Of a DNA stretch of 64,000 nucleotides, positions 24,401 through 64,000 are shown in pieces (the first letter of the stretch is position 1; each line of letters starts with the position of its first letter). The notes under the pieces were generated by a model. That model was not told where the DNA came from. It saw only the letters and a list, made by a program, of their open reading frames with translations, and ran no database searches. The stretch is from Macrostomum lignano (lineage: Eukaryota): assembly GCA_002269645.1 (NCBI GenBank), contig NIVC01001745.1:1-64000 (forward strand), read 5' to 3'. A program made the translations under genes and the position numbers.

Positions 24401-42882
<18,482 letters not shown>

Positions 42883-43419
42883 CCAAAACAGATCTGCTGG
42901 AGCTTCAACTGCAGCCGAGAGCGCCTCGTGAAGAATTGAATTGCGTTTTTTTCATATTTCATATTTTGGTTATGCTTATGCAATTTTATACATTAATTAA
43001 TATTCCTACTGATGAAGACTGCTTCTGCTAGTTTATGAATTTAAGAACCCTCTGTTCAGTAGCAATTCATGTTTAGTCCATATGTTAGTCTTGAATATTA
43101 AGCTTAACGTATGTCCATGTTCCATATTTATGAATTTATGAATTTCAACATTTGTTGCATGTACTGCTCTCAATAACTCTTCACGCATAGTACACCTTTT
43201 CAAGTTCAATTTCGATCGGGGTCCAGTTCTGAAACAACTAGCGGAAATTCAATTCAGACTGAGGATAATTTTGTCTATGGCTAAACCTTACTTCGGTCAG
43301 AATGTTTTGAGCTGGGGTTAGACTGGGCCCAGTCTAAATTGTCTGAATTGAATTTCCGCTGGTTTTTTTGGAACTGGACTTTGATCGGGATTGAACGTGA
43401 AAAGGTGTAGAAAATTATT

Positions 43420-44075
43420 AATCTCTCGACACACCGGAAATGCCGCTAATCCATCTCCCAACAAACGGAAATGCCACTTATCCATCTCCCAAAACACCGG
43501 AAATGACGCTAATCCATCCCAAAACACACCGGAAATGCCGCTAATCCATCTTCAAACACACCGGAAATGCGGCTAATCCATCCCAAAACACACCGGAAAT
43601 GCCGCTTATCCATCTCCAAAAACACCGTAAGTGCCGCTAATCCATCTTCCAAAACACTGGAAGTGCCGCTAATCCATCTTCAAACACACCGGAAATGCGG
43701 CTAATCCATCCCAAAACACTCCGGAAATGCCGCTTATCCATCTCCCAAAACACCGGAAGTGCCGCTAATCCATCTCCCAAAACACCGGAAGTGCCGCTAA
43801 TCCATCTCCCAAAACATCGGAAGTGCCGCTAATCCATCTCCCAAAACACCGGAAGTGCCGCTAATCCATCTCCCAAAACACCGGAAGTGCCGCTAATCCA
43901 TCCCAAAACACATCGGAAATGCCGCTAATCCATCTTCAAACACCGGAAATGCGGCTAATCCATCCCAAAACACACCGGAAATGCCGCTAATCCATCTTCA
44001 AACACCGGAAATGCGGCTAATCCATCCCAAAACACACCGGAAATGCCGCTAATCCATCTCCCAAAACACCGGAAA
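43420..44075. repeat. ~33-bp minisatellite (ACACCGGAAATGCCGCTAATCCATCTCCCAAA) between convergent genes
   Basis: Direct periodicity. Confidence 0.95.
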
Positions 44076-44794
44076 CGCAGCGGCATATGATTTGCATATT
44101 AATAAAAAATTGCATACGAATACAGCGCCAAGTCACTAAATTAACATTTGTCTTTCATTTTTGCCGCAAAAAGCAGTTGTTTGCCGCTGCATCACTAATA
44201 ATACGCGTACTCTGTTAAGCATAATTATGATTAATCTCGTATAAACCACTACTTGTGCTGCTATTTGCATGTGGAAAGGGTCAAAAACTTATTATTTCAC
44301 AGGTACAGTATGATGAGCATTGTGCATGCATGAGTACAATTATAAATTAATAAACGCATAGGAATTAAGCGCCGAAGTTAAAATATTGAAGGATATGGGC
44401 AATAACAAATTGCCACGTTTCTCCATTTTTATTTGACAGCAATTTATGACAGTATATATATATTTACTCAAGTTACATATATACTGATATATCTGCATTA
44501 GTTTACGCCAATATTTATTAGTGCATGTGCACTTTTGAGACAAATAAATTATAGGAAGCCGCGACCACCTGCCCGCCTCCAATAAATACACAATCGAGGG
44601 CAAATCAGAGTTAATGACAACTGGAAAAAAAGTTAATAGAAAACCAAAATAACTAATTTGTTTGAATAAGCGATGTCGCTGGACATTTGTTATAACCAGC
44701 AGGGGTAAATAAGTTGAAAATTATAAAAGAAAACAAATCCTTTGTTACTGAAACTGCATAAATTTATTGTCATAAATATATATACGAGTACCAT

Positions 44795-45235
44795 ATCTTT
44801 GACACCTGTCCCCTTATCTTTGACACCTGTCCCCTTATCTTTGACACCTGTCCCCTTATCTTTGACACCTGTCCCCTTATCTTTGACACTTGTCCCCTTA
44901 TCTTTGACACCTGTCCCCTTATCTTTGACACCTGTCCCCTTATCTTTCACACCTGTCCCCTTATCTTTGACACCTGTCCCCTTATCTTTGACACCTGTCC
45001 CCTTATCTTTGACACTTGTCCCCTTATCTTTGACACCTGTCCCCTTATCTTTGACACCTGTCCCCTTATCTTTGACACCTGTCCCCTTATCTTTCACACC
45101 TGTTCCCTTATCTTTGACATCTGTCCCCTTATCTTTGACACTTGTCCCCTTATCTTTCACACCTGTTCCCTTATCTTTGACACCTGTCCCCTTATCTTTG
45201 ACACTTGTCCCCTTATCTTTCACACCTGTCCCTAT
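44795..45235. repeat. 21-bp minisatellite (TTTGACACCTGTCCCCTTATC)
   Basis: About 21 copies. Confidence 0.97.
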
Positions 45236-45424
45236 CTTTCCCTATTTTTCAATGACGGACTAATCGTTTACAGTAGATAGGAAGCTAACCTATAATATAG
45301 TATTTAGAAAGCATTACTAATAGTAATTAAGAATTGACTGAATAAAAACATAGCCAATAACAAGGCGGAGAGCTGAAGTATTACACTGTTGATTTAATTA
45401 ATCGGTATGATTAATATTATTGAA

Positions 45425-45910
45425 TCAACCAGAAGTGGCGGCCGCGGTCCCGCTAGCACTAGCCGCCGACGGCTTAGCCTCCAGCCGGATGTGCAAAGCA
45501 GATTTCAGTCGCTGCCGCTGCTGCTGCCCCTGGGCGTCCTCATTCAGCTCGTGCAGCAGTCGGTCTGTACAAGCTACGGTGGAGGTGTACACAGCCGGCT
45601 GGCTGGTCAGCTCATCGGCCAGCTGCAGGGCCAGATTGGCCGCTCTGGGCACAGCGGCGCCGAGCCCGTGCACCCAGCACAGGTGAGGCGGCCGGCGGAG
45701 CAGCCTGCGGCAGCGCAGCAGCTGGGCTGGGAAGTTGGTTCGCTTAGTCACGTAGACATCGAATCCGCGCTGCGGCAGGCGGGGAGGCAGGCAGGAGATC
45801 AGGCGGGACTCCTCGGCGTCCATTAGGTTGGCTAGGGGATTCTCTTTGGCCGCGGCGGCTGCGGCGTCGGGAGTCGGCGAGGTGGCGACGGGCTTGGCTG
45901 ATGAACTCAT
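45425..45910 (-). CDS. POP7: RNase P/MRP protein subunit p20 (Rpp20/POP7, Alba-like fold), intronless
   Basis: FDVYVTKRTNFPAQLLRCRRLL, VHGLGAAVPRAANLALQL, TSTV and SALHIRL match Rpp20 hallmarks; ATG taken at 45910. Confidence 0.9.
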   Translation of the reverse strand: MSSSAKPVATSPTPDAAAAAAKENPLANLMDAEESRLISCLPPRLPQRGFDVYVTKRTNFPAQLLRCRRLLRRPPHLCWVHGLGAAVPRAANLALQLADELTSQPAVYTSTVACTDRLLHELNEDAQGQQQRQRLKSALHIRLEAKPSAASASGTAAATSG

Positions 45911-46017
45911 GCCGAGTGCAACGATTCTAAGAGTTGATGGATTGATTATCACTGGGGATCAATGGAGATTATTTGGAACTGTTTATGATTTTCGGCAGAC
46001 ACTCGGGACACCAGAAT

Positions 46018-46982
46018 TCACAGGGTGCCTCTTGGAAGGCTGAACGATAGGCGATCGCCAAGCTCGCCCCAGGTGGGCCGGTACACCTGCGGGGGTTGCG
46101 ACGGAGAGTGCGGGTGGTTTAAGAAATTCTGCAATAGATCAGAGAGCAAGAGATTAGATTAGGGGGAGAGATCAGAGAGCAAGAGATTAGATTAAGGCGA
46201 GAGATCAGAGAGCAAGAGATTATATTAAGGCGAGAGATCAGAGAGCAAGAGATTATATTAAGGCGAGAGATCAGAGAGCAAGAGATTATATTAAGGCGAG
46301 AGATCAGAGAGCAAGAGATTAGATTAAGGCGAGAGATCAGAGAGCAAGAGATTAGATTAAGGCGAGAGATCAGAGAGCAAGAGATTATATTAAGGCGAGA
46401 GATCAGAGAGCAAGAGATTATATTAAGGCGAGAGATCAGAGAGCAAGAGATTAGATTAAGGCGAGAGATCAGAGAGCAAGAGATTAGATTAGCGAGAGAG
46501 ATCAGAGATCAGAGAGCACGAGATTAGATTAGCGAGAGAGATCAGAGATAACGAGATTAGATTAGCGAGAGAGATCAGAGATCAGAGAGCACGAGATTAG
46601 ATTAGCGAGAGAGATTAAACCAAGGGAGAGATCAGACATCAAGCTATAGACTGGGCAGTGGTTACTAAAGGAAAGATCAAATAGAATAAGAGACCAATGG
46701 TATATATAAAGTTATCAAATATACTTAAAAAAGCATTGCACACACCTGATACACGCAGAACCAGGTAAGCAGTGCCACAGTCCAGATGGCGCTGCCAATG
46801 CCGCTAATAATAACCAGACGCCGGATCTGCGCCTGTTCCGGATAGGCCGGCGCTAGGAAGGCCTCGCGAAAAAACCAAGCAAAGTTGGTTAGCCAAAGGA
46901 ATGGCAATAGGAATGCGCCGCCGATAGTGTATTTGCGACAGATGTTGAGCTTGTCAGCACCGCTAGCCTTAGATAGATCCAT
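46018..46982 (-). CDS. PSENEN: Gamma-secretase subunit PEN-2
   Basis: Exons 46982-46746 and 46086-46018 give 101 aa: KLNICRKY..GGAFLLPFLWLTNFAWFFREAF..Q..IR....YRPTWGELGDRLSFSLPRG. Confidence 0.96.
46135..46620. repeat. ~33-bp minisatellite in the PEN-2 intron (GAGAGATCAGAGAGCAAGAGATTAGATTAAGGC)
   Basis: Direct periodicity. Confidence 0.96.
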
Positions 46983-47009
46983 GCGCCTGCGGGAGTGGCG
47001 GCGCCGGCG

Positions 47010-47825
47010 GCTTAGGGGCGATGCTCATGGATGTTTCGGGGCGATGCTCATGGATGCTTAGGGGCGATGCTCATGGATGCTTAGGGGCGATGCTCATGGA
47101 TGCTTAGGGGCGATGCTCATGGGTGTTTAGGTGGACGATTCTCATGGATGCTTAGGGGCGATGCTCATGGATGTTTAGGAGGACGATTCTCATGGATGCT
47201 TAGGGGCGATGCTCATGGATGCTTAGGGGCGATGCTCATGGATGTTTAGGAGGACGATTCTCATGGATGCTTAGGGGCGATGCTCATGGATGCTTAGGGG
47301 CGATGCTCATGGATGTTTAGGTGGACGATTCTCATGGATGCTTAGGGGCGATGCTCATGGATGTTTAGGTGGACGATTCTCATGGATGCTTAGGGGCGCT
47401 GCTCATGGGTGTTTAGGTGGACGATTCTCATGGATGCTTAGGGGCGATGCTCATGGATGTTTTGGGGCGATGCTCATGGATGCTTAGGGGCGATGCTCAT
47501 GGATGCTTAGGGGCGATGCTCATGGATGCTTAGGGGCGATGCTCATGGGTGTTTAGGTGGACGATTCTCATGGATGCTTAGGGGCGCTGCTCATGGGTGT
47601 TTAGGTGGACGATTCTCATGGATGCTTAGGGGCGATGCTCATGGGTGTTTAGGTGGACGATTCTCATGGATGCTTAGGGGCGCTGCTCATGGGTGTTTAG
47701 GTGGACGATTCTCATGGATGCTTAGGGGCGATGCTCATGGGTGTTTAGGTGGACGATTCTCATGGATGCTTAGGGTGATTCTCATGGATGTTTAGGGTGA
47801 TTTTCATGGATGTTTAGGGGCGATC
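47010..47825. repeat. 23-bp minisatellite (GGGGCGATGCTCATGGATGCTTA / GGTGGACGATTCTCATGGATGCTTA) between RPL13A and PEN-2
   Basis: Two alternating variants forming a higher-order unit. Confidence 0.96.
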
Positions 47826-48039
47826 CTACTAAGCCTAAATACTAAAAAGGAAACAAAAAAGAAGAAACACAAAAGACGACAAACTGTTCAGCGTATTTTG
47901 TAATTTTTTTACTCCAACACGAGCGGCACAGACACTTGTCTCTATCGACACACAGAAGTTTCAGTCTGCGAGCCTGTCAGCAATCATGACGCACTGTCAC
48001 AATTCGAATCTCTAAGAATCCATTCACAAATCCAGCCGT

Positions 48040-49453
48040 TCACTTGTGCCCGTAGGACTCGATAATCTTCTGATACTTGGCCACCCGATCCTTGACCTTC
48101 TCGACGGCCTTGGAGCGAAGCTGGCGGTCGCGCAGCTGGCGCTTGTGAAAGTGAGCCGATTTCACCTTGCGCCTGCGCTCCAGGGTGCCAATTACGCCCT
48201 GGTATTTCCAGCCGACCTCGTGCGACAGGCGGCCGAGGACGCAGAACTTGCGGCGGGTCTTCAGCCGGAGGCACTTGAGCGCCGACGGCACCACCTGACG
48301 CTTGGCCTTGTCGTAAGGGCTGGGGATGCCCTCGAACACCTGGATGTGTGTGACGGCGGGTGTTGCGAAGCGATGGTGATACAATTTCGGAGGAATCCGG
48401 GAGGGGATGCTAAGGATGGAGAATCGGGGAATTAAGAGATGCTGAAGATGGAGAACAGGGGAGGGGAATCTGAGGATGGAGAATCGGAGAGGGGATGTAG
48501 GTGTTGGAGAGCCGGGGAGGGGAATCTGACGATGGAGAATAAGAGAGGGGATGCAGGTGATGGAGAGCCGGGGAGGGGAATCTGAGGATGGAGAATCGGA
48601 GAGAGGATGCAGCTGATGGAGAACAGAAGAGGGGAATATAACGATGGAGAATAAGAGAGGGGATGCAGGTGATGGAGAGCCGGGGAGGGGAATCTGATGA
48701 TGGAGAATCGGAGAGGGGATGCAGGTGATGGAGAGCCGGGGAGGGGAATCTGACGATGGAGAATCGGAGAGGGGATGCAGGTGATGGAGAGCCGGGGAGG
48801 GGAATCTGATGATGAATCTGACGATGGAGAATAAGAGAGGGGATGCAGGTGATGGAGAGCCGGGGAGGGGAATCTGAGGATGAGAATAAGAGAGGGGATG
48901 CAGGTGATGGAGAGCCGGGGAGGGGAATCTGAAGATGGATAATCGGAGAGAGAAGGCAGCTTATGCAGCTGATGGAGAACCGGGGAGGGGAATCTGAGGA
49001 TGGAGAATCCATGAGGATGGAGGATGGGGATGGAGGGGATCATGGATGGAGGGATGAGGATGGAGGGGATGATGCGGATGCAGAATCGGAGAGGGGATGC
49101 AGCGGATAGAGAATGGGGCCAGACATGGAACAGCTGCTCACCTTCAAACGGTCAAGAGCCTCGGCGCCCCTGGCGAGCTTGTGCGGCAGCATGCCCCGCA
49201 CGGTGCGCCAGAAGATCTTAGACGGGGCGCGGAAGTGGTACGGTCCCCGACTGGGTTTAGTGTTAAGCCGCTTGCGCAGAAACTCGTGGTAGCGAGTCTT
49301 GTTGCGAAAGAAGGAGCCGGATATGTTGATGCCCTCGCAGCGGACAACTACAACCCGCTGGCCGAGGAGCAGCGTCTTGGCGACCACGGCAGCCAGACGG
49401 CCGAGAAGGTGGCCGCGAGCGTCGATAATCAACGGGCTGGATTTGAATCCCAT
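48040..49453 (-). CDS. RPL13A: 60S ribosomal protein L13a (uL13)
   Basis: Exons 49453-49142 and 48339-48040 give 203 aa: [62 protein letters not shown] and [12 protein letters not shown]. Confidence 0.98.
48390..49100. repeat. Purine-rich ~56-bp bipartite minisatellite in the RPL13A intron
   Basis: GATGGAGAGCCGGGGAGGGGAATCTGA.. and GATGGAGAATAAGAGAGGGGATGCAGGT subunits alternate. Confidence 0.94.
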
Positions 49454-49614
49454 TGCGGCATGCAGTTGGGAGTTTTTTTAGGTTGGATTTGTATAGGAAT
49501 CAAAGTTAGTGAGCTGTGCGGCAGTGGCTGCCTTTAGCAGATAAGCTCTATTTCTACTAACTATAAAAAAGCACATCAGATAAACCAAAGGCTGAGTAGA
49601 CAAAACTAAAAGAC

Positions 49615-51800
49615 CAGAGGATAAGCCACAGGACCAATAGAAGGCGGGTAAGCCACAGGGCCAATAGGAGAAGGCGGGTAAGCCACAGGACTAATAGAAG
49701 GCGGGTAAGCCACAGGACCAATAGGAGAAGGCGGGTAAGCCATAGGACCAATAGGAGAAGGCGGGTAAGCCACAGGAACAATAGGAGAAGGCGGGTAAGC
49801 CACAGGACCAATAGAAGGCGGGTAAGCCACAGGACCAATAGGAGAAGGCGGGTATGCCACAGGACCAATAGAAGAAGGCGGGTAAGCCACAGGACCAATA
49901 GGAGAAGGCGGGTAAGCCACAGGACCAATAGGAGAAGGCGGGTATGCCACAGGACCAATAGGAGAAGGCGGGTAAGCCACAGGACCAATAGAAGGCGGGT
50001 AAGCCACAGGACCAATAGAAGAAGGCGGGTAAGCCACAGGACCAATAGGAGAAGGCGGGTGGGTAAGCCACAGGACCAATAGGAGAAGGCGGGTATGCCA
50101 CAGGACCAATAGGAGAAGGCGGGTAAGCCACAGGACTAATAGGAGAAGGCGGGTAAGCCACAGGACCAATAGGAGAAGGCGGGTATGCCACAGGACCAAT
50201 AGGAGAAGGCGGGTAAGCCACAGGACCAATAGAAGGCGGGTAAGCCACAGGACCAATAGAAGAAGGCGGGTAAGCCACAGGACCAATAGAAGAAGGCGGG
50301 TAAGCCACAGGACCAATAGGAGAAGGCGGGTAAGCCACAGGACCAATATGAGAAGGCGGGTAAGCCACAGGACCAATAGGAGAAGGCGGGTAAGCCACAG
50401 GACTAATAGGAGAAGGCGGGTAAGCCACAGGACCAATAGGAGAAGGCGGGTATGCCACAGGACCAATAGGAGAAGGCGGGTAAGCCACAGGACCAATAGA
50501 AGGCGGGTAAGCCACAGGACCAATAGAAGAAGGCGGGTAAGCCACAGGACCAATAGGAGAAGGCGGGTAAGCCACAGGACCAATAGGAGAAGGCGGGTAA
50601 GCCACAGGACCAATAGGAGAAGGCGGGTAAGCCACAGGACCAATAGAAGGCGGGTAAGCCACAGGACCAATAGAAGAAGGCGGGTAAGCCACAGGACCAA
50701 TAGGAGAAGGCGGGTAAGCCACAGGACCAATAGAAGGCGGGTAAGCCACAGGACCAATAGAAGGCGGGTAAGCCACAGGACCAATAGGAGAAGGCGGGTA
50801 AGCCACAGGACCAATAGGAGAAGGCGGGTGGGTAAGCCACATGGCCAATAGGTGAAGGTGGGTAAGCCACAGGACCAATAGAAGGCGGGTAAGCCACAGG
50901 ACCAATAGGAGAAGGCGGATAAGCCACAGGACCAATAGGAGAAGGCGGGTAAGCCACAGGACCAATAGGAGAAGGCGGGTAAGCCACAGGACCAATAGAA
51001 GGCGGGTAAGCCACAGGACCAATAGGAGAAGGCGGGTAAGCCACAGGACCAATAGGAGAAGGCGGGTAAGCCACAGGACCAATAGGAGAAGGCGGGTAAG
51101 CCACAGGACCAATAGAAGGCGGGTAAGCCACAGGACTAATAGGAGAAGGCGGATAAGCCACAGGACCAATAGGAGAAGGCGGGTAAGCCACAGGACCAAT
51201 AGAAGGCGGGTAAGCCACAGGACCAATAGGAGAAGGCGGGTAAGCCACAGGACCAATAGGAGAAGGCGGGTGGGTAAGCCACAGGGCCAATAGGAGAAGG
51301 TGGGTAAGCCACAGGACCAATAGAAGGCGGGTAAGCCACAGGACCAATAGGAGAAGGTGGATAAGCCACAGGACCAATAGGAGAAGGCGGGTGGGTAAGC
51401 CACAGGGCCAATAGGAGAAGGTGGGTAAGCCACAGGACCAATAGAAGGCGGGTAAGCCACAGGACCAATAGAAGGCGGGTAAGCCACAGGACCAATAGGA
51501 GAAGGCGGGTGGGTAAGCCACAAGACTAATAGGAGAAGGCGGATAAGCCACAGGACCAATAGGAGAAGGGGGGTGGGTAAGCCGCAGGACCAATAGGAGA
51601 AGGCGGGTAAGCCACAGGACCAATAGGAGAAGGGGGGTAAGCCACAGGACCAATAGGAGAAGGCGGATAAGCCACAGGACCAATAGGAGAAGGCGGGTGG
51701 GTAAGCCACAGGACCAATAGGAGAAGGCGGGTGGGTAAGCCACAGGACCAATAGGAGAAGGCGGGTAAGCCACAGGACCAATAGGAGAAGGCGCATATGC
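49615..51800. repeat. 27-30-bp minisatellite (AGGACCAATAGGAGAAGGCGGGTAAGCCAC), ~75 copies, upstream of RPL13A
   Basis: Direct periodicity; source of the 400-729 aa artefact ORFs. Confidence 0.98.
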
Positions 51801-52794
51801 CAAATGATTGTAACACCTATCTGTAAACTTTCTTTGCCAGCTCTAGTAGTTAAATTAATGAAAATGCAGTTAAAATCCATAGAAATAACAGTAAGTCAAA
51901 GTCAACAATGGTTTCCTACGCCAGACAACAGGTCAGAGAGTCCGTTGCATTGCTTTCATACTTGGACAACTCAGTCAGCAACAATCAAACCTGACAAGTG
52001 ATTTTTTTCATCCAATCAAATAGGAGCACACGCACAAAAATGGCCATAGATTCTGGCCCAGAAGAGAAAAACAATAGGCATTAATATATTATAATTATGA
52101 ATATCGAATTGCAGGAGAAGTGTGTGTAAATTCATGGCGGCTCGAATATATGATAGATTAATAAACTCACTCAATTAATTATGTTAAAGTGAACGCAAAC
52201 AAACCGGTGATAATTAAGGGAAGTAAAATAAAGAGGGTTTAGGTGGTTAAAATTAGATTCTATATATGGAGAAAGAGCAGGCAACAAAGGAAGCTAACAC
52301 ACAAGCACACATTCTAGACAATAAATTTAATAGTGTAAGCAATTCAGCTAAGGGGAAGAAGTGCGCAACTTCTCAAATTTTGATTTCTTATGTCTAGAAA
52401 TAACAGTTTAATTTTTTCCATTGCATTCCTAGTGCGCAGAGAGAAACTTTGAATGTGTGAACCAAAAAGATAAACAAAATAAACAATAAGCAAGAAAAAT
52501 AGCCAGACGAAAATCACAGAGTATTCACCCCAGAAACACGAGAAAACGCGGCTCAGGTAGGACGGGATGCTTTTGTTTCTTAGAAAATGTTTACTCATCC
52601 TAGTTGGACACACATTGTGATTAAAAGTTTTTTATCTTGGAGACAAAACAGCCTTCAAAAGTATTTGGTTCTAAGAAACAAAGAATTCCGCCTGTCTACA
52701 CCAGCCGTCTTTCATAGAACAAATAAAAGCGGTTAACGTGTTCAATTCAGCTACTGACAGTAGTTTCATTGCAAACAAATACGATAGTAGTTGT

Positions 52795-55700
52795 TCAACT
52801 TTCGTGATTAGCACTAGCGGCCGCCGCGGCCGAACCGGAGCTCTCAGTGTTGGCCTCCGGTTTCATCGCCGGGAAGAACAGCACCTCCTTGATGTTGTTG
52901 GTGTCGGTCAGGAACATAGCAAGCCGGTCCAGTCCTAGACCCCAGCCGGCAGTTGGCGGCAGGCCCATCTCTAATGCGCCGAGAAAAGTCTCGTCAACAA
53001 ACATGGCCTCTTCGTCGCCTTGCGCTTTAGCAGCAGCCTGGGCTTCGAATAGCTGGCGTTGCACTATGGGGTCGTTCAATTCCGTATAGGCGTTGCAAAT
53101 CTCGCGTCGGCAGGCGAACAGTTCGAAGCGTTCCGTCAGGCCTGGGATGGACCGGTGCCACTTAGCCAGGGGAGACATGATCTGGCAATGGGGATGCGCG
53201 CGATTCTGTGCCGCAAGACTCAATTCACAGTACGTAAGACAGCATCTGAATTGCACGGTTCAAGCTAGCGCCTTCTTAACCATAAGTACCTTGGGATGCC
53301 CGCTACCCCTCCCTCATCAGTACCTCTGATGCTTGAGAATGCCCGCTACCCCTCATCAGTCCCTCTGATGCTTGAGAATGCCCGCTACCCCTCATCAGTC
53401 CCTCTGATGTTTGAGATGCCTGCTAACCCCCTCATCAGTCCCTCTGATGTTTGAGATGCCTGCTAACCCCCTCATCAGTCCCTCTGATGTTTGAGATGCC
53501 TGCTAACCCCCTCATCAGTCCCTCTGATGTTTGAGATGCCTGCTAACCCCCTCATCAGTCCCTCTGATGTTTGAGATGCCTGCTAACCCCCTCATCAGTC
53601 CCTCTGATGTTTGAGCTGCCTTCTAACCCCCTCATCAGTCCCTCTGATGTTTGAGCTGCCTTCTAACCCCCTCATCAGTCCCTCTGATGCTTGAGAATGC
53701 CCGCTACCCCTCATCAGTCTCTCTGATGTTTGAGATGCCTGCTAACCCCCTCATCAGTCTCTCTGATGTTTGAGCTGCCTTCTAACCCCCTCATCAGTCC
53801 CTCTGATGCTTGAGAATGCCTGCTAACCCCCTCATCAGTCCCTCTGATGCTTGAGAATGCCCGCTACCCCTCATCAGTCCCTCTGATGTTTGAGATGCCT
53901 GCTAACCCCCTCATCAGTCCCTCTGATGTTTGAGATGCCTGCTAACCCCCTCATCAGTCCCTCTGATGTTTGAGATGCCTGCTAACCCCCTCATCAGTCC
54001 CTCTGATGTCTGAGATGCCCGCTAACCCTCAGGTATCGATCGCTAATAAAATGAACTCACCTGCGGATGGTTAATCAGGAAAGTGGGATTAATACACTCA
54101 GTCTCTAAGAAGTCGCCAGCCAGTTTGTCCAACAGGCGGGGCACTGTCCTGGGCGGCTGGCATTCTACGTTGCGCTCAACACAAAGCCGGTCGAATAGAG
54201 CCCTGTTAATCGGGTCAGGGAGACTGGCATACAGGTATGATTAAGATTAAGAGATTGGGGGATAAAAGGTGATCAGTAAAATGTAATAGAGACAATAAAG
54301 CATTGCTAATGAAGCAGTGTTAAAGGAAGGGTTAAGAGCTAGAGTGAATAATGGAAAAGTGAAGGGTCATGATGAGTGAGTGAAAGATCTGGATGAAGGG
54401 TGAGGGTGAAGGGTCTGGATGAAGGGTGAAGGTGAGGGTGAAGGGTCTGGATGAAGGGTGAGAGTGCAAGGTCTAGATAAAGGGTGAGGGTGAAGGGTGA
54501 AGGGTCTGGATGAAGGGTGAGAGTGCAAGGTCTAGATAAAGGGTGAGGGTGAAGGGTGAAGGGTCTGGATGAAGGGTGAGGGTGAAAGGTCTGGATGAAG
54601 GGTGAGGGTGAATGGTCTGGATGAAGGGTGAGGGTGAAGGGTCTGGATGAAGAATGAGAGTGCAAGGTCTGGATAAAGGGTGAGGGTGAAGGGTCTGGAT
54701 GAAGGGTGAGAGTGCAAGGTCTGGATAAAGGGTGAGGGTGAAGGGTCTGGATGAAGGGTGAGAGTGCAAGGTCTAGATAAAGGGTGAGGGTGAAGGGTGA
54801 AGGGTCTGGATGAAGGGTGAGGGTGAATGGTCTGGATGAAGGGTGAGAGTGCAAGGTCTAGATAAAGGGTGAGGGTGAAGGGTGAAGGGTCTGGATGAAG
54901 GGTGAGGGTCTGAATGAAGGGTGAGAGTGGCGGACAGAATATATGGTCAAAACCGCATGCCTCAACCTGTCAAATAATTAATACCTGGCTTCCTCCGTGC
55001 CCAGCGTATCCGGGGGAGGCAGCGCCACCCCAAGCCGTTTGCCCAGCTCGGCGTACAGATCCAACCGACGGAACGGCGGCGTGAAGTCCACCTCCCATTC
55101 CACACCTTCCTCCGCATGATAGACGATCTTGTGAGATCCGGTGAGCTCCTTGACTAAGCCGGACAGAAGCTGCTCAGTGATGGCCATGAGATCATTGTAA
55201 TCAGCGTAGGCCATGTAGAACTCGCACATGGTGAACTCGGGATTATGAGTCATGTCGATGCCTTCATTGCGAAATTGTCGGCCAATTTCGTACACCCGAT
55301 CGAAGCCGCCAACGATCAGCTGTTTGAGGAACAGCTCGGGAGCGACTCGAAGGTACAGATCTCGGTCAAGCTCGTTGTGATGCGTCACAAATGGCTTAGC
55401 AGTGGCGCCGCCAGGGATCACGTTCATGATGGGTGTCTCAACCTCCAGGAAGCCCATCTGGTCTAGGAACCTGCGCCAGATGAATGAGAGTTAGCATTGT
55501 CTTGAAACTGGGTAGCTTTGAGTGATAATAATTCAAAATTCTACCCTAGAAGATAACATCGCAGGATTAAAGAGAGGCCTGCATCCTCAGGACTCTGAGT
55601 GAAGAATATTGAGCCCTTGAGAGTCACGGGACGAAGAATCTCGCCCTTAGAGAGCAGCAGGATGAAGAATCTCACCCTTAGAGAGCAGCAGGATGAAGAA

Positions 55701-56898
55701 TCTCACCCTTAGAGAGCAGCAGGATGAAGAATCTCACCCTTAGAGAGCAGCAGGATGAAGAATCTCACCCTTAGAGAGCAGCAGGATGAAGAATCTCACC
55801 CTTAGAGAGCAGCAGGATGAAGAATCTTACCCTTAGAGAGCAGCAGGATGAAGAATCTCACCCTTAGAGAGCAGCAGGATGAAGAATCTCACCCTTAAGG
55901 CCGCAGGATTAAGAATCTCACCCTTAGAGAGCAGCAGGATGAAGAATCTCACCCTTAGAGAGCAGCAGGATGAAGAATCTCACCCTTAGAGAGCAGCAGA
56001 ATGAAGAATCTCACCCTTAAGGCCGCAGGATTAAGAATCTCACCCTTTAGAGAGCCGCAGGATTAAGAATCTCACCCTTTAGAGAGCCGCAGGATTAAGA
56101 ATCTCACCCTTTAGAGAGCCGCAGGATTAAGAATCTCACCCTTAGAGCCGCAGGATTAAGAATCTCACCCTTAGAGAGCAGCAGGATGAAGAATCTCACC
56201 CTTAGTGCCGCAGGATAAGAATCTCACCATTAGAGAGCCGCAGGATTAAGAATCTCACCCTTTGAGAGGAACAGGATTAAGAATCTCATTCTTAGAGAAC
56301 CGCATGATTAAGAATCTCACCCTTAGAGAGCCACAATATTAAAGAATCTCACCCTTTGAGAGGCACAGGATTAAGAATCTCATCCTTAGAGAACCGCATG
56401 ATTAAGAATCTCATCCTTAGAGAGCCGCAGGATTAAGAATCTCACCCTTAGAGCATATTCGATTCTGGGGGTCAAAGTTTTAGCTATAGGATTGGCTATT
56501 TAAAAATTTACGAACCTGCGAACATAGGTAATAATTCGAGCCCTCATGATGAACCGCTGTCGCACCTCAGAGTTAATGATTAGATCCAAATGTCGCTGTC
56601 TGAATCGAGTCTCCTTATCCTTGAGGCCATAGTGCAGATGCGGCAGCTGGCGAAGGCACGGTGCCAGCAGGCGCATCTCAGTAGGCAGGATACTCAGCTC
56701 GCCCTTAGCCGACCGAGTCGGCTTGCCAATCACGCCGACAATGTCGCCTCGCTTGAGCTCCTCGTTGGTCTTGTGAAAGTCCGGCCCAGTGTAATTGCCA
56801 GCGTTGGCTAGAATTTGCAGCTTAGTGCCCTCGCCGCGGATATCGTAGAAAATCAGCTTTGAGCCCTGGCGGTGTAAATTTGGTAGTAGTATTAATAT

Positions 56899-56933
<35 letters not shown>

Positions 56934-57557
56934 GCAGCAGTAGTAATAGTAGTAGTAACAGTAGTAGTAAAAACTCAAGTTACTCATAAAGAACAAATAG
57001 CGGTTATTAATAACCGCTGACTACTATTCTACTGCTTATGTGCATGCACATTAAGTAGTATAATCTTCAGCAAGTATAACAGTTAAGCACACAACACTAC
57101 ATGTAACTACGTAACTGCTATTTGGGCTACAGATCGATAGATTATACTATTCAATGCGTGCCCCTTAGTAGTAGTAGTAGTAGTCGCCCTTGATATTCAA
57201 TACTAAAAAGAAGGCACAAATCAACATACCTGCAATCGCTTAGAGTGTATCCGGCCAGCAATACTGACTGTCACGTCCTCAGTTTGGCCAGCCTGCAGAT
57301 GCCCATATTTGGCGATAAAATCGGTCAACGATATTGACACGTGAAATTTGTGCGGATAAGGCGTGGCGCCGCTCTCCTTCATGGCGCCAATTGCGGCGCT
57401 GCGCAACTCGAAGTACTTAGTGGGATCAATGTCGTCCATATCTATTGCTGCGGCTTTGGCGCCAGTCTTGTTGGCTGGGGCTGCCGCAGCTGCAGCGGCC
57501 TCCTTGGCGGCCTTCTCCTGCGCCTTCTGCTCGGCTTTGAGACGCCTCTTTTGCTCA
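52795..57557 (-). CDS. KARS1: Lysyl-tRNA synthetase (class II), 5' exon not located
   Basis: Exons 57557-57230, 56865-56516, 55470-54985, 54202-54061, 53181-52795 join in phase. Motifs [86 protein letters not shown] and [13 protein letters not shown]. Confidence 0.97.
53300..54030. repeat. ~40-bp intronic minisatellite (CCCCTCATCAGTCCCTCTGATGTTTGAGATGCCTGCTAAC)
   Basis: About 18 copies. Confidence 0.96.
54375..54925. repeat. Intronic GGGTGA-rich composite minisatellite
   Basis: TCTGGATGAAGGGTGAGGGTGAAGGG and GAGTGCAAGGTCTAGATAAA variants. Confidence 0.94.
55620..56450. repeat. ~33-bp intronic minisatellite (GAATCTCACCCTTAGAGAGCAGCAGGATGAA)
   Basis: Direct periodicity. Confidence 0.96.
56882..56970. 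repeat. (TAG)n trinucleotide microsatellite, intronic
   Basis: Direct reading. Confidence 0.9.
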
Positions 57558-59094
57558 CTAAATGTTCAGTTAACAGATTGGAGTTTGTTAATTTACAGCT
57601 AATATTGTGAACTTCTGAGATGCCAATGCTTATGAGGGAATTTCTCAGTTTCCAATGCTCACCACAGATACTAAAAGGCCACTTGGGCATATATACCTGG
57701 TAAAACAGCTGTCTACTTTCAGTTCAGTAACAAATAAGACTACATAAGCTATTTTATAAAAAGAAAAATTGGGTTGGGGGGGGGAAGTGTGGACAGGCGC
57801 AGTTGGAGGGTTTAGGCTGGGGGGGGGTAAGAGCCAATAAATGTGCCTTGGCTTCATAAATACATTAAAATCCTTGTTTAACTTACTACTGAACTGAAAG
57901 TAGCTTACACGCAAATGTGCTGAGTGGGTATCTGGTTATTCTAGTATCTGTGATGACAGTTTTTAATCAGTCTTAAGCTCATGCAAGAATGTATATTCCT
58001 TAGTTATTCAATAAATTTCATATTTTTAGGTTCATTTTACAAATTTAGGACAAAATGCATAAACTTTGATCTCTATTGCACAATTTCAGCCAATGGCCAT
58101 AATTGTGGATAGCATCTAGTGTAGATTGTCCCCTGGCAATGTAAGTGTAGTCTGGTATACTGGCAAAGGGAAATACAGTGCAGTTCAGACCTTGGCTGCA
58201 ATATTCCGTCAACTTTTCTGGCCATGTACTGAATGGATTGAAGGTGATATTTTTTCTGAGTATCCTTTGCAACTTTTCATGCATGCTTGGATTGAGGATA
58301 AATAAAAAAGACACCTGCAGAAATTTCCAACATGAAATATGCTAGAGAATTTAAATGATATTTCTGCTTACTACTTATGTATATACTGTATACTTGTTCA
58401 TTTGTATTGGCAATTGTACATGTACCATTTGTTTATTTGCATATATATGTTAAGTTGAGTAGAAATCACAAAATTGAAAATGGATAAAATGATAAACATG
58501 TACATGTATGTGCATATATGGTTTACATGTATATACTTGTACAAAAATAAAATAGCAGCAAAAATGAAAATATGATGTTAAGGATGCAAAATATGTAGCT
58601 CGTATTATTGCTATATATATATATATATATATATTTATATGCATGTCTTATAATTACATGAGCATATTTAATGAAAATATTGCATGTTGTCTATTCATAT
58701 ACAGTACAGTGTAGTCAATCTGTACATATATGTATATGAAATGCATAAAGATGATACATAAACACATGTACCAGTGGCATCTACCATGCATGGATTTAAA
58801 TGTATATGGTAGGGAGGGACAAAGCCAAGAATTCTACATATGCAGTGTATATTATTTTCAGAATTAGTATTGTCAATGCTCATTATGGTGCCATAGGCAC
58901 TATGTTTTGTCGCCTTAAAGCAAAATTATTGCAGATTACCATAACAGTTCAAAAGTTGAAGTTGGAAAGACAATTAAAGTGCATTGTTGGCACATGGCAC
59001 AGTTTTTCCTTGCCCCCCTCCCTAATGATGATGCCCCTGTGAATATATTTAAAAGCAAAAAAATCTGAGATATAACTATATATTAAAGCAAAAA

Positions 59095-59985: not shown

Positions 59986-60739
59986 AATCTAGACAAAACT
60001 AAGTTGTACCAGATGGGTGAAATTTTGAGGTTGGGCATATATGCATATGAATATGCACTTAGAGTAAAGGTAATATTGCTAGCTTTGATTTGCAATGATT
60101 TTAGCAGAGTGCATATGTAGTGATTGTAAACTGAAGGTGAGAGGGGGAAGGGTGCAAAGGTAAAGGGGATTTTTGATGCTTTCAAACTGGAATGAGCAGT
60201 GGTTTTCTGCGTGTGACTATTTGTCATATTTGACACGCTTTCCTATAGCCAACTTTGGTTCACAAACATTTTAATGGGAAACAAATTTAGGTGATTGTAA
60301 ACCAAAGGTGATATATAAGCTACTAGCTCAAACTTGCTACTTTACTTGACACATGGGACTATTTGATACCCTTTCCTATAGCCAGCTTTGGTTCACAATA
60401 ATTTTAATGGGAAACATATATTTGGATAATTGTAAACTGAAGATATACTTGTAAGCTACAATAATCTTAACCATCCTTTGAAATAGAGTTAGTTTGCCAA
60501 CTTTTTATTGGTTATTGGTTTTTATGTTTTACAACTATTTTAAGTGGTGATCGTCATTGTTTGAAATGATTGTAAACTAAAAGAATGCTAAAAAACCTAT
60601 AGTGCGAAAGGATAGGTATATGATGGAAAGTTCTGTTGTATACTAGGATCACCTGTCATACATATTGTACATTTCTCTTTTTTGGGGGGGGGTGCAAAGT
60701 ACTATTTTTGGTCTTCTTGAACTTTAGGTATGTAAAATA

Positions 60740-61733
60740 CGAGGGGTGTCCAAAAAGTAGTGATACTTTTAACCGTAGCTCTCGTTCTATAGCTTCCTGT
60801 GATTTAAAATTTTATGAACTGATAGCGGAAAAAATCTTTTACAGACTGCTTTTTGAATTTTTAAAATTGATACCAGAGAACAAAAGTTATACCCACGAAA
60901 GTAACAGTACCTGTACCATAGAGTTACACAAATTATATCGAAATTTATAATAGTTGACTTCTGCACTCATTCATTAAGAAGGCATCGATAAATGTCTTGT
61001 TTAAGCAATACCAAAGCCCAATTGCAATATGATGCTCACTGTGACTGACTGAAATTTGTCTATTGACGGGATCAGGCGCAGAAAAATAAAGCATTAAATT
61101 CATTACTTTACTTGCAAACAGAGGATCGCTTGCATTTTGCGATTCGTTCATGATTTCATTGCTCATACTCGACAACACACATGCATGTGCACTCAGTTGT
61201 TGCTCAGCAAAGTACCATCTTCACTCTTTGGGGCGCTGGCCATGGTGCCTCAGAAATTCACGCAAAACTTTGCTCTGCGCACGGATCCTCTGCGGTCAGC
61301 AAAATGACAGTTTATCGATGGATGGAGCAGTTCAGCGAGGGAAGGATTGACTTGGCAGATCAGCATTGGACGGGGCGGCCATACGTTCATCGACCTGATG
61401 TACTGGCGGACTCCATTCTGGATCTTCTTGACGAGGACTCCCGAATGACCATTAGAGAGATCGCTGACAGGTTGGACAAGCCGAAATCAACAATTCATCG
61501 AAGCTTACTCGGCATGGATCTCGTGAAGCTCAGCCTATAATTTGTGTAACTCTATGGTACGGGTGCTGTTACTTTTGTGGGTATAACTTTTGTTCTCTGG
61601 TATCAATTTTAAAACTTCAAAAAGCAGTCTGTAGAAGAGATTTTCCGCTATCAGTTCATAAAATTTTAAATCACAGGAAGCTACAGAACGAGAGCTACAG
61701 TTAAAAGTATCACTACTTTTTGGACACCCCTCG
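60740..61733 (+). mobile_element. Internally deleted Tc1/mariner (mariner-like) element with ~200-bp TIRs and TA target duplication
   Basis: TA|CGAGGGGTGTCCAAAAAGTAGTGATAC ... GTATCACTACTTTTTGGACACCCCTCG|TA; inverted identity extends over 60740-60937 vs 61537-61733; internal transposase N-terminal fragment. Confidence 0.92.
61181..61540 (+). pseudogene. Truncated mariner transposase (bipartite HTH DNA-binding region only)
   Basis: ASEIHAKL...SAVSKMTVYRWMEQF..G...L.D....GRP and EDSRMTIREIADRL..PKSTIHR match mariner N-termini; the frame stops in the right TIR before the WVP linker and DDD domain. Confidence 0.85.
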
Positions 61734-64000
61734 TACTTCAATTTTCTGATTATTCTGAAACTTTCACCAGAGTCTTAGATAGAGGCTGTCCAAAATGATA
61801 ATAAAGCAAAAAACTGCAAAAATTATCCTCAGAGGTAACAGGAGCTCGATTTGTTAAACTCCTATATAACTACTAGTAATTTGATACAAGCAGTTTTGGA
61901 GAATTGTGTTTGAAAGTTGAACTTTTTTTAGAATCATAACTTTCTAATGTAATATTTTCCAAAACTTTATGAAATCATTCTTAAAAAACATTTAGAGGAT
62001 TTGAATTTTATCTCTGAAAAAATAGTGTCTATTTTTATTTTTTTCACTCAATTTGTTATAGTGTAGTGAGAGTGCCACATCAGTTTACTTTTTTTAAAAA
62101 ATGCTGACTAATGGTGCCACCTACCCCTCACCACCCACTTTTTGATTCACTGTTGTTCCCTCATTGTTGATTACTACTAGCTGTATATTCTTTACTTGTT
62201 TACCTATACTAATTTCTACTAATCTGTGTTGTCTCAATTCTGAAGGTAACTACAGCTGCTAATATCAATTAGTTTTGATAGGATTATAATTTTTTCCATG
62301 GTTATATTTTTGATAAATTGTTGAATTTTTAATTTAAGCTTCATTTCAATTTTCTCCTTATTACCCCCCTCAGTCTCCAAATTTATCTACCTAATCTTCC
62401 ATAGACCCCCATGCCTTTATTCAAGTTTAGGTATGTAAAATCAATCCCCATGAAAATTTTCCCCACCCTAAAATCCCACATTCCCCATGCCCCAGTTGTT
62501 GACAATTGTTAGCCCCTCCCGAGACCTTCCCTCAGTCCATGAGTTTATCTACCTAATCTTCAATAGACTTCTATGCCTCTATTGAAGTTTAGGTACATAA
62601 AATAAATCCCCATGAAGATTCTTCCTGCTCTAACATCCCCATTCCCTATGCCTTGGTTGTTGGTAATTGTTAGCCCCCCCTTTGAGACTTGCCTCCCACC
62701 CCCTCAGTCTCTGAATTTATCTACCTAATCTTCAATAGACCCTTATACCTCTATTGAAGTTTAGGTACATAAAATCAATCCCCATAAAGAATCTCCCCAC
62801 CCTAAAACTCCCCATTCCCTATACCCTCGTAGTTGGCTTTAAGCTACAAAAAAATGAAGCTCAAATTTTGAAATCAGCATTATCAAAAACCCATAAACAC
62901 AAATATAATGATCCTATTAAAACTGCAACTATTTTATCTACCTAAAGTTCAAGAAGGCCATTTTTCAATCCCTGTCATACTATTATACAATAAGCCAAAA
63001 TTTAAATTCACATCGTTGTACATAGACATCTTTCTGCACTATGGCAAAAAACTATAGAAAAAATTATGATCCTATCAAATCTGCAACTACTTTTATTATC
63101 TACCTAAAGTTCAAAAAGTCCATAATGTTTAGCATATGCCACACTCCAGATCATGTAATATATGTCCAAAAATTTGGGCATGCATTGGCCTTGCATGCCA
63201 AAATTAGGCGTGCACAATTGGCATGCATCACTCTGAGAAAATAGTATGCATGCATACCTAGTGCGCACTTTATAGAATCACACGTAAAAGTTATTGTGAA
63301 ATAGAAAAAAGATGAAAAAAGTTCATTTTAAAGTGCAAATTTCAGCTTTCCAGTTTTTTCAAGGTCGTAAAGATCATTTAAACAAATCTTTACGTGTATA
63401 AATTTTCCACTATAAATTGTATAGCCAAAAAAGCATAAAAAACAACTAAATCATTTGGCAATAAGGGTTTATTACGCAATTTAAAAAAGGTATTTTATTG
63501 TCACAATATAAAAAAAGGTCATTTATTGTTGCAACAGTAGCGTATTTTTGAGAATGGGTGTGCACTATATTTTTTTCGGCATGCATTTATAAATATTCAA
63601 TTTTTGTTTGGGTATGCACCCAGCATGATCGAGACTATGGAGCATATAGCAATTGTCAAGTTTGGTTTATTAAATTATTTTGACTCCAAAAAAGTAAGGT
63701 ACAAACTATTTTAAGTACAAATAGCTATTTTATATATGGTACACTGGAAAAAGTGATATCCTCGCCATAAATTCAAGTTTATACCAGAAAAACAAATGTA
63801 CTTATGATATATATGTTATGTGCTAGCAATTGTTAAATTTTGTTCAATAAATAATTTTGACTTAGAAAAGTAAACTATGAACTAGGCCTATTTCAAATAC
63901 AAACAAATATTTTTAAGAGACTTAAGTCCAATTAAGCACTAATTCAATGCTTCAAAACTTGTTATAATGTATCTAACCCTAGAAAGCTACAATAGTCTAT

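Follow-up and report, generated by a model that had tools for sequence, protein, structure and literature searches.

Macrostomum lignano has a single 35-nt spliced leader (SL), and its published operons comprise about 10,000 genes; about 30% of its genes are trans-spliced and 15% lie in operons (PMC8629364). The intergenic distances within these operons have a mode of about 100 bp after repeat subtraction, with a threshold set at 1 kb (PMC8629364), and multi-gene precursors make up about 7% of the assembled transcripts (Wudarski et al. 2017, PMC5730564). The median intercistronic length in Schistosoma mansoni operons is 99 bp (PMC12582326). A search of the supplementary tables of three published papers for the four genes considered here, or for their identifiers, gave no match, and terms for PEN-2, Rpp20, L13a and tRNA ligase are absent from the supplementary tables of PMC12582326.

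The window analyzed here comprises 64,000 nt of contig NIVC01001745.1 (positions 1 to 64,000) from the M. lignano assembly Mlig_3_7 (GCA_002269645.1), and carries KARS, RPL13A, PEN-2 and POP7, all on the minus strand. The exact POP7 protein maps to this contig. A first-pass annotation had proposed that these four housekeeping genes form a polycistronic operon resolved by SL trans-splicing, a mode of expression that is established, together with operons, in this flatworm (PMC8629364). Its coordinates all led to the features it described, and the co-orientation of the four genes on the minus strand is confirmed by the gene models, as follows:

57557-57230, 56865-56516, 55470-54985, 54202-54061 and 53181-52795, minus strand: five downstream coding exons of KARS (lysyl-tRNA synthetase)
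49453-49142 and 48339-48040, minus strand: exons of RPL13A, 203 aa (PF00572, 1e-23), separated by an intron that contains a minisatellite
46982-46746 and 46086-46018, minus strand: exons of PEN-2 (gamma-secretase subunit), 101 aa (PF10251, 8e-33)
45910-45425, minus strand: single exon of POP7/Rpp20 (RNase P/MRP subunit), 161 aa (PF12328, 2e-11)
45393-45424, minus strand: POP7 3' UTR with ATTAAA at 45398-45393, where the co-oriented cluster ends

The PEN-2 intron, of 659 nt, contains a minisatellite as well. Between the four genes there are only repeats and no gene on the opposite strand, which is the adjacency criterion of Ustyantsev & Berezikov 2021, and the order KARS-RPL13A-PEN-2-POP7 is the same in each of the three genomic copies. 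POP7 is followed by a convergent laminin-G-like gene on the plus strand, whose end lies near 42882. Rfam and tRNA scans of the whole window gave no match.

On balance, the locus is probably an ordinary M. lignano operon, with PEN-2/POP7 as its secure core and resolution by SL addition. Of the four-gene operon first proposed, the PEN-2/POP7 part stands on its geometry and conservation; RPL13A fits the distance rule but is annotated in a separate cluster, and KARS is borderline. No support was found for the functional coupling proposed among the four genes. In metazoan operons, the housekeeping genes brought together are generally unrelated.

The locus resembles the published M. lignano operons (PMC5730564, PMC8629364) in coming from the same species, in its co-oriented, conserved housekeeping genes, in matching the mode of about 100 bp (at PEN-2/POP7, and at RPL13A/PEN-2 after subtraction of a minisatellite) and in the repeats that inflate its intergenic distances, as the authors of PMC8629364 describe; it differs from them in that PEN-2 has no public CDS and the acceptors are each one base off the motif [T/C]TNCAG. 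With the SL2-type operons of C. elegans it shares a gap of about 100 nt from the upstream 3' end to the trans-splice site, a content of mostly housekeeping genes and a U-rich tract past the upstream poly(A) signal (here behind RPL13A). Unlike those operons, it belongs to a species with one SL only and without an SL2 specialised for operons (PMC8629364), tolerates kilobases of minisatellite and lacks the canonical AAUAAA between PEN-2 and POP7. The trematode operon of cytochrome b-c1 subunit 7 and enolase (PMC12582326) is similar in its two genes, short intercistronic region and SL ending in AUG, but consists of another gene pair; in parasitic-flatworm operons generally, acceptors are common to cis- and trans-splicing and chimeric gene models are the tell-tale (PMC12582326).

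A shared transcription unit is very probable for PEN-2 and POP7, and the sequence that separates them is short:

45911-46017, minus strand: PEN-2/POP7 spacer, 107 nt, with no ATG inside

The distance from the PEN-2 stop to the POP7 ATG, given as about 107 bp in the first-pass annotation, is exactly 107 nt, within the repeat-adjusted limit of <1 kb for M. lignano operons, and the spacer also measures 107 nt in both other genomic copies, with one base different. Synteny in other flatworms had been suggested as a check, and the PEN-2/POP7 pair with a short spacer is indeed kept in two Macrostomum congeners, where the spacer measures 120 nt and 101 nt and POP7 is only 74% and 60% identical; the spacer shows no sequence conservation across the congeners, despite its similar length. 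It is the 107-nt spacing, not the acceptors, that is beyond chance at PEN-2/POP7. The spacer is also the only non-coding segment of the cluster that is free of minisatellites (TRF). It holds weak variants of the poly(A) signal (CATAAA at 45987-45982 and AATAAT at 45973-45968), and canonical AATAAA is absent from it in all three Macrostomum species, which was counted against an SL-resolved operon.

Three of four public-read contigs from the two congeners carry an intron-less PEN-2, the spacer and POP7 in one molecule. The dicistronic contigs all begin within the first 100 nt of PEN-2, and these starts favour RNA. A search of papers for the accession numbers of the read sets gave no match. The position of the PEN-2 intron (codon 79/80) has no counterpart in Nematostella, whose introns sit elsewhere, and is not ancestral; intron conservation therefore fails as proof that the contigs are cDNA, and they could be genomic DNA of intron-less genes. 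UniProt entry A0A1I8IIK8 joins the two genes in one chimeric model (PEN-2::POP7), with the TTAG at -16 as its acceptor, and chimeric gene models in flatworms are considered to point to polycistronic precursors (PMC12582326). Linkage to PEN-2 was found neither at five POP7 loci of other animals nor on a contig with a distant RPL13A.

The transcription-unit cluster of POP7 has a low number (1489), as do short TRANSSPLICED-flagged genes split off from long multi-gene units (PPIA, Mlig001299.g5, and fibrillarin, Mlig001519.g1); RPL4 and RPP30 carry the TRANSSPLICED flag as well. The low number is a weak hint in favour of the derivation of POP7 from a multi-gene unit. As a readout of transcription-unit length the cluster number was rejected: most calibration points fit a long-to-short numbering, but Mlig025993.g1 (2,165 nt) does not.

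Both start codons of the pair are preceded by candidate acceptors:

47018-47011, minus strand: candidate PEN-2 acceptor CCCCTAAG, exon start 47010, 28 nt before the ATG
46992-46987, minus strand: candidate PEN-2 acceptor CCGCAG, exon start 46986, 4 nt before the ATG
45957-45952, minus strand: candidate POP7 acceptor CCCCAG
45932-45927, minus strand: candidate POP7 acceptor TCTTAG

The two acceptors singled out earlier are present, namely CAACTCTTAG, which ends at 45927, 16 nt before the POP7 ATG, with a candidate exon start at 45926, and CTCCCGCAG, which is followed by GCGC and the PEN-2 ATG, with a candidate exon start at 46986. By chance alone, about 70% of ATGs, and so most genes, are expected to have an AG within 20 nt. 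Compared with [T/C]TNCAG, CCGCAG matches at 5/6 positions and the alternative PEN-2 acceptor reads CCTAAG, while TCTTAG and CCCCAG match at 5/6 each, neither being a full match; the motif itself is present at 9,551 of 21,754 published M. lignano sites, i.e. under half (PMC8629364). The PEN-2 site at -4 is lost in the third genomic copy, L015, where it reads CTG, not CAG, and where the PEN-2 and POP7 frames are intact; the acceptor at -28 is present in all three copies.

By the outron rule (Conrad et al. 1993, cited in PMC8629364), a trans-splice acceptor lies near the 5' end with no cis donor upstream, and this is the arrangement of PEN-2 in the copy studied here. Neither GTRAG nor an AG-GT donor occurs in the 1,053 nt from the RPL13A stop to the PEN-2 acceptor, and GT[AG] is absent from the sense strand of the 815-nt array between the two genes. 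Since this copy has no cis donor upstream, the PEN-2 acceptor is an orphan, which is a condition for trans-splicing; the alternative that it belongs to a cis-spliced 5' UTR intron was checked, and no matching donor was found in this copy. Copy L015 has nine GTGAG variants within its expanded RPL13A/PEN-2 array.

The 3' end of the SL reads …CAATTTATTGCATG, and the leader finishes in AUG. Joined at 45926, it would put this AUG in a 61-codon out-of-frame ORF across the POP7 start, a point counted against SL addition; joined at the PEN-2 acceptor, it would open an ORF of 6 or 14 codons that stops 14 nt beyond the PEN-2 AUG. SL 12-mers occur neither in the window nor in any locus compared, exact-protein look-ups of POP7 and its paralogue returned genome contigs only, and local alignments for SL remnants upstream of an intron-less RPL13A paralogue and three genes were no better than shuffles. 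Conservation between the copies was discarded as a guide to signals, their unique sequence being 98-99% identical and thus too close to inform.

From this arrangement we infer co-transcription, SL addition and the choice of AG. PEN-2 and POP7 would be transcribed as one precursor from a promoter upstream of the minisatellite that abuts PEN-2, and the PEN-2 intron would then be removed. The precursor would be cleaved and polyadenylated behind PEN-2, inside the 107-nt spacer, most probably as in other M. lignano operons, and the single 35-nt SL would most probably be joined at the AG just before the POP7 ATG (45926 or 45951). PEN-2 most probably receives the SL at the orphan acceptor before its own ATG (46986 or 47010), with the minisatellite as a discarded outron.

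It is possible, though unlikely, that PEN-2 and POP7 are instead left on an uncut, mature dicistronic mRNA, with POP7 reached by leaky scanning or by reinitiation after the ORF opened by the SL AUG. Drosophila-type unprocessed dicistronic mRNAs have the same short AUG-free upstream ORF, weak start context and lack of a clear intervening poly(A) signal: here no ATG occurs in any frame over the 410 nt from the PEN-2 AUG to the POP7 AUG (396 and 398 nt in the congeners), the PEN-2 AUG has a weak context with C at -3, and the spacer, without the canonical signal in the three species, is purine-rich in species B, with a poor acceptor. The dicistronic congener contigs are also as expected of such an mRNA, as are the end of the SL AUG ORF just past the PEN-2 AUG and the restriction of the GenBank annotation at these loci to the longer ORF, POP7. 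The absence of ATGs departs only weakly from expectation, however: none of the animals compared has an internal Met in PEN-2, and these GC-rich genes contain few out-of-frame ATGs (0 in 612 nt of RPL13A). In codon-aware controls, the depletion gave P = 0.008-0.32 depending on null and species, and was rejected as proof of leaky scanning for want of significance. In addition, multi-gene precursors are commonly assembled in M. lignano even for resolved operons, the three Macrostomum species are non-independent samples, and, unlike in the Drosophila-type case, the species has known machinery for resolving precursors.

A more elaborate form of the uncut mRNA, in which the pair is a conserved unprocessed dicistronic message of Macrostomum and the SL AUG ORF (6 or 14 codons) overlaps the PEN-2 start, appears very unlikely. 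Ribosomes that initiate on the SL AUG would skip PEN-2, terminate and reinitiate 400 nt downstream at POP7, and those scanning past it would make PEN-2. If this were true, the relative output of the gamma-secretase subunit and the RNase P/MRP subunit would be governed by the SL AUG.

Within the SL-resolved operon that we favour, the chances are about even that RPL13A is the first gene ahead of PEN-2 and POP7. The sequences that bear on this, and on the relation of RPL13A to KARS, are as follows, those before the RPL13A ATG coming from motif scans:

49622-51793, no strand: KARS/RPL13A minisatellite, 30-nt unit, about 73 copies (TRF)
49454-49621, minus strand: 168 nt of unique sequence 5' of the RPL13A ATG
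49613-49606, minus strand: candidate RPL13A acceptor TCTTTTAG
49570-49561, minus strand: candidate RPL13A acceptor TTTTTTATAG
49521-49514, minus strand: candidate RPL13A acceptor CCGCACAG
49495-49488, minus strand: TATA-like TATACAAA, 35 nt before the RPL13A ATG
47842-47913, minus strand: RPL13A 3' end signals, AGTAAA at 47913-47908, then a GU/U-rich tract ending in TTTTTAG at 47884-47842
47010-47824, no strand: RPL13A/PEN-2 minisatellite, 815 nt in 23/48-nt units (TRF), each unit ending in CCCCTAAG

The RPL13A stop lies 1,057 nt from the PEN-2 ATG, or 242 nt once the 815-nt minisatellite is subtracted, which is under the 1-kb rule. As described in the first-pass annotation, the interval is made up of a 3' UTR, a U-rich tract and the minisatellite, which reaches to 28 nt from the PEN-2 ATG. 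Judged by their sequence, AGTAAA and the GU/U-rich tract behind RPL13A appear to be a poly(A) signal and its downstream element; if RPL13A is the first gene of the operon, its poly(A) site would lie about 70-90 nt from the PEN-2 acceptor, minisatellite subtracted. The exact RPL13A protein is found as PAA64499.1/PAA80569.1 (BOX15_Mlig027547g1/g3), annotated in a short transcription-unit cluster of its own, Mlig027547, in contrast to Mlig001489 for POP7, and this was counted against its membership. In one copy RPL13A and PEN-2 are 4.5 kb apart, which counts against a shared unit because of the long polymerase run past a strong poly(A) site.

A single promoter upstream of KARS for all four genes, with SL trans-splicing resolving RPL13A, PEN-2 and POP7, is decidedly unlikely. 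The co-orientation without an intervening gene and the constant order in the three copies would fit such a unit, as would the shortness of the unique sequence before the RPL13A ATG, with its pyrimidine-rich acceptors, and the trans-splicing of another ribosomal protein gene, RPL4, in M. lignano. Nevertheless, the KARS stop is 3,341 nt from the RPL13A ATG, and subtraction of the 2,172-nt minisatellite leaves 1,169 nt (1,155 nt in the third copy), borderline in that it lies at or above the 1-kb limit. RPL13A has its own short cluster and would need much stronger expression than the gene preceding it; the TATA-like box precedes its ATG closely, and no AG occurs in the last 60 nt before that ATG. 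The membership of KARS is thus doubtful on distance, and the gene more probably forms a unit of its own upstream. Its five exons join in one open frame of 563 aa that ends in a stop, and PF01336/PF00152 are assigned to the gene call in GenBank. Position 57557, where the range of the first-pass annotation ends, is an internal acceptor and not the 5' end of KARS, and the frame needs an upstream exon; the annotated gene range begins above about 61190. With a candidate first exon at 61166-61012 the length comes to exactly the 615 aa of the annotation, but no such protein is in the collection and the exon is not claimed.

It is highly improbable that there is no operon at all and that each gene has its own promoter, that of POP7 inside the PEN-2 intron or last exon, with AGs due to chance or ordinary splicing: the chance frequency of AGs near ATGs, the loss of the -4 AG in one intact copy and the annotation of RPL13A as a stand-alone unit would agree with this, but a spacer of 101-120 nt is kept in three species in length and not in sequence, it alone among the non-coding segments of the cluster has no minisatellite, the upstream flank of PEN-2 is minisatellite almost to the ATG, and both a chimeric public model and dicistronic contigs exist.

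None of the three copies has a PEN-2 CDS of its own in GenBank. The POP7 paralogue is PAA80568.1 (BOX15_Mlig001489g2), and POP7 and RPL13A have consecutive accession numbers; together with the missing CDS, this would agree with an annotation pipeline that detected no SL cut within the PEN-2/POP7 pair, and was counted against the operon. Public annotation needs correction, with PEN-2 missing from GenBank at three copies and fused to POP7 in UniProt, and for PEN-2 or POP7 transgenes neither the 107-nt spacer nor the sequence immediately 5' of PEN-2 should be expected to supply a promoter. Beyond annotation the finding matters little, SL-resolved operons being already documented genome-wide in M. 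lignano.

The minisatellites differ in length among the copies: the one between RPL13A and PEN-2 spans 0.8 kb here and 3.8 kb in the third copy, and the one between KARS and RPL13A spans 2.2 kb here and 742 nt in the third copy. These unequal lengths provide a natural test of polymerase run-through of repeats within a flatworm operon.

Gene models were rebuilt out of the window sequence and then checked against Pfam. They bear out the co-orientation of four genes on the minus strand that the first-pass annotation had proposed as a spliced-leader operon:

Minus strand: KARS, five exons found, 563 aa
Minus strand: RPL13A, two exons, 203 aa
46018-46982, minus strand: PEN-2, two exons, 101 aa
Minus strand: POP7/Rpp20, one exon, 161 aa

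Its account of spacers and splice sites was likewise accurate. The PEN-2 stop and the POP7 ATG, said to be ~107 bp apart, are separated by 107 nt, and the acceptors CAACTCTTAG (16 nt ahead of the POP7 ATG, exon start 45926) and CTCCCGCAG (4 nt ahead of the PEN-2 ATG, exon start 46986) are exact. The RPL13A-PEN-2 gap of 1,057 nt consists, as claimed, of a 3' UTR, in which AGTAAA occurs, followed by a U-rich tract and a minisatellite (815 nt), and the KARS-RPL13A gap, put at 3.3 kb, measures 3,341 nt and includes a second minisatellite of 2,172 nt. Position 57557, the upper limit of the proposed operon, needs correcting as a KARS start: it is an internal acceptor, and the reading frame requires an upstream exon. 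The annotated KARS range in the third genomic copy of the block (L015) starts at the equivalent of a window position beyond ~61190. The downstream end of the cluster is POP7. The gene beyond it is transcribed towards POP7 from the plus strand: it is Laminin-G-like, with exons at 39629-39925 and about 42700-42882, the last one ending near 42882, and it scores 21.6 bits against PF02210, just below the cut-off. The POP7 protein has an exact match at identical coordinates on NIVC01001745.1 of the Mlig_3_7 assembly (GCA_002269645.1), and a paralogue, 99% identical, is annotated in Macrostomum lignano as PAA80568.1 (BOX15_Mlig001489g2).

PEN-2 and POP7 very probably form a single transcription unit. 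The whole block occurs in three genomic copies with identical gene order, in the window, L006 (NIVC01000575.1) and L015 (NIVC01000426.1), and each has a PEN-2/POP7 spacer of 107 nt, with one base differing between them; this spacer is also the sole non-coding segment of the cluster without a minisatellite. The linkage was also found in two congeners known from contigs assembled out of public read sets, where the arrangement is the same and the spacers are 120 and 101 nt. These spacers share no sequence with that of M. lignano, so that length is kept and sequence is not, at protein identities to M. lignano of 74% and 60% for POP7 and 96% and 91% for PEN-2. Three of the four congener contigs carry an intron-less PEN-2, the spacer and POP7 on a single molecule, and every contig begins inside the PEN-2 coding sequence, no more than 100 nt from its start. 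These starts, and run numbers belonging to multi-sample series, favour an origin of the contigs from RNA. Intron conservation fails as proof of this, because the introns of Nematostella PEN-2 are placed differently, with codon 79/80 uninterrupted. The only public PEN-2 model, UniProt A0A1I8IIK8, is a 265-aa chimera with PEN-2 in frame with POP7; its donor, CT/GTGAAT, lies at the stop codon of PEN-2, and its acceptor is exactly the TTAG flagged earlier. A comparison of flatworm trans-splicing read chimeras of this kind as a signature of polycistronic precursors, and also found that acceptors are often common to cis- and trans-splicing (PMC12582326).

None of the three genomic copies has a PEN-2 CDS in GenBank, nor was the exact 101-aa protein found in the protein collection, and the GenBank protein accessions of POP7 and RPL13A are consecutive. 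The published annotation pipeline cut precursors at spliced-leader and poly(A) peaks and called ORFs afterwards (PMC5730564). The missing CDS could reflect the lack of a cut between PEN-2 and POP7, or a 101-aa ORF that failed the coding filter.

M. lignano has one 35-nt spliced leader, CGGTCTCTTACTGCGAAGACTCAATTTATTGCATG, on ~30% of its genes, and ~15% of genes (10,458 assigned) lie in operons (PMC8629364); multi-gene precursors make up ~7% of its assembled transcripts (PMC5730564), and conservation of the leader extends to M. cliftonense and M. hystrix (PMC10468722). Spliced leaders and operons being already established in this species, its identity affects the prior for an operon reading, and nothing at the locus goes beyond what is already described for M. 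lignano.

Resolution of PEN-2/POP7 by the leader appears likely, on sequence evidence that points both ways; no M. lignano transcript contig for these genes was found in the collections searched. In favour, the PEN-2 acceptor of the window copy is an orphan, the classical condition for trans-splicing: the 1,053 nt upstream contain no GTRAG and no AG/GT, and GT[AG] is missing from the whole 815-nt array. AG/GT is found at all six real donors of the cluster, and candidate acceptors lie 4-41 nt away from start codons. Other observations, the missing PEN-2 CDS among them, speak against this reading or at least call for caution. In L015 (15600-15630, equivalent to window 46983-47010) the CAG at -4 is CTG while PEN-2 and POP7 are intact, which means that the AG at 46987 is either dispensable or recently lost. 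A second PEN-2 acceptor, CCCCTAAG (exon start 47010), is present in all three copies. L015 also differs by a single PEN-2 substitution, A6S, and by a change of CCATGAG to CCGTGAG in some array units, from which nine donor-like GTGAG sites arise.

At POP7, the leader, which ends in AUG, would open a 61-codon out-of-frame ORF spanning the POP7 start if joined at 45926, and would give AUG-UGA at an alternative acceptor, CCCCAG (exon start 45951); given these consequences, both are listed as candidate sites. TGA directly follows the acceptor both at this alternative site (ccccag/TGATAA) and at KARS exon A (aacatttag/TGAGC, 57558-57566). The leader would yield AUG-UGA at either, and the likeness may be coincidence. 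Canonical AAUAAA is absent from the spacer in all three species; that of M. lignano has CATAAA and AATAAT.

Alternatively, PEN-2/POP7 could be an uncut dicistronic mRNA on which POP7 is reached by leaky scanning, a reading we regard as unlikely. Such scanning would need just what is found between the two start codons, a stretch with no further ATG in any frame (410 nt in M. lignano, 396 and 398 nt in the congeners). However, PEN-2 lacks an internal methionine in all animals compared, and these GC-rich genes contain few out-of-frame ATGs (none in 612 nt of RPL13A). When synonymous codons were resampled and the spacer was shuffled, P was 0.008, 0.15 and 0.22; with the codons in actual use permuted, it was 0.32, 0.16 and 0.26.

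Of the four genes in the operon originally proposed, PEN-2 and POP7 very probably belong together, the chances that RPL13A joins them are about even, and KARS is improbable as a member. Published distances between trans-spliced neighbours, with repeats subtracted, peak near 100 bp, and a 1-kb repeat-adjusted threshold was used (PMC8629364). RPL13A qualifies under this rule (242 nt from stop to PEN-2 ATG minus the array), and the array-subtracted distance between the PEN-2 acceptor and the probable poly(A) site of RPL13A, near 47890, is about 70-90 nt, at the published mode. Against joining, the different cluster names of RPL13A (Mlig027547) and POP7 (Mlig001489) mean that they were assembled as separate transcription units; the paper that set the rule cautions that units are broken at spacers rich in repeats (PMC8629364). 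The 4,473-nt spacer in L015, including a 3.8-kb array, also counts against it, as does the very strong first gene that RPL13A, being ribosomal, would make. Mlig numbers appear to rise as units get shorter (16440, 2,590 nt; 19751, 1,978 nt; 32562, 768 nt), with Mlig025993.g1 (2,165 nt) as an exception; low-numbered short trans-spliced genes from multi-gene units include PPIA (Mlig001299.g5, 991 nt) and fibrillarin (Mlig001519.g1). If this rule holds, the POP7 number implies that the gene was cut out of a transcription unit with several times the combined length of PEN-2 and POP7, a hint of transcription starting well upstream. For KARS, the repeat-adjusted distance to RPL13A is 1,169 nt (1,155 nt in L015), and nothing beyond distance favours the linkage; the 168 nt before RPL13A hold possible acceptors and a TATA-like box, with no AG in the final 60 nt. 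The suggested functional coupling of the genes finds nothing in its support beyond adjacency.

In the RPL13A 5' region (49460-49466), an out-of-frame ATG 8 nt ahead of the start (ctgcATGccgcaATGg) opens a 10-codon overlapping ORF, which is unusual given how heavily ribosomal protein mRNAs are translated; it is present in the third copy too. A second, intron-less RPL13A gene, BOX15_Mlig015828g2, lies at L007 10026-10636 and in L008 (NIVC01003273.1 and NIVC01003334.1), flanked by genes for a Mat89Bb-domain protein and a protein kinase. No leader remnant was found upstream of it. Its protein is 99% identical to window RPL13A despite many synonymous differences, which marks it as an old, selected retrogene-like paralogue.

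Apart from the 107-nt PEN-2/POP7 spacer, each intron and intergenic spacer of the cluster has its own, unrelated minisatellite (units 21-56 nt):

44794-45239, minisatellite
46136-46615, minisatellite
47010-47824, minisatellite
48447-49035, minisatellite
49622-51793, minisatellite
53291-54028, minisatellite
54380-54929, minisatellite
55614-56453, minisatellite

Repeat copy number differs several-fold between genomic copies (815 vs. 3,812 nt; 2,172 vs. 742 nt). Pyrimidines predominate on the sense strand of most arrays within the putative transcribed region (0.54-0.77), and purines do so in the one behind POP7 (0.23). A MITE-like short inverted repeat ('...aaaggtgtag...' / '...ctacacctttt...'), recognized by eye at 43200-43400, adjoins a 32-nt minisatellite (43431-44075). 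Upstream of KARS exon A, inside the first KARS intron or 5' region, lies a deleted mariner-type element (60735-61738) with 203-nt terminal inverted repeats (95% complementary) around a 119-aa ORF (61181-61540, + strand) with Mos1-type HTH domains.
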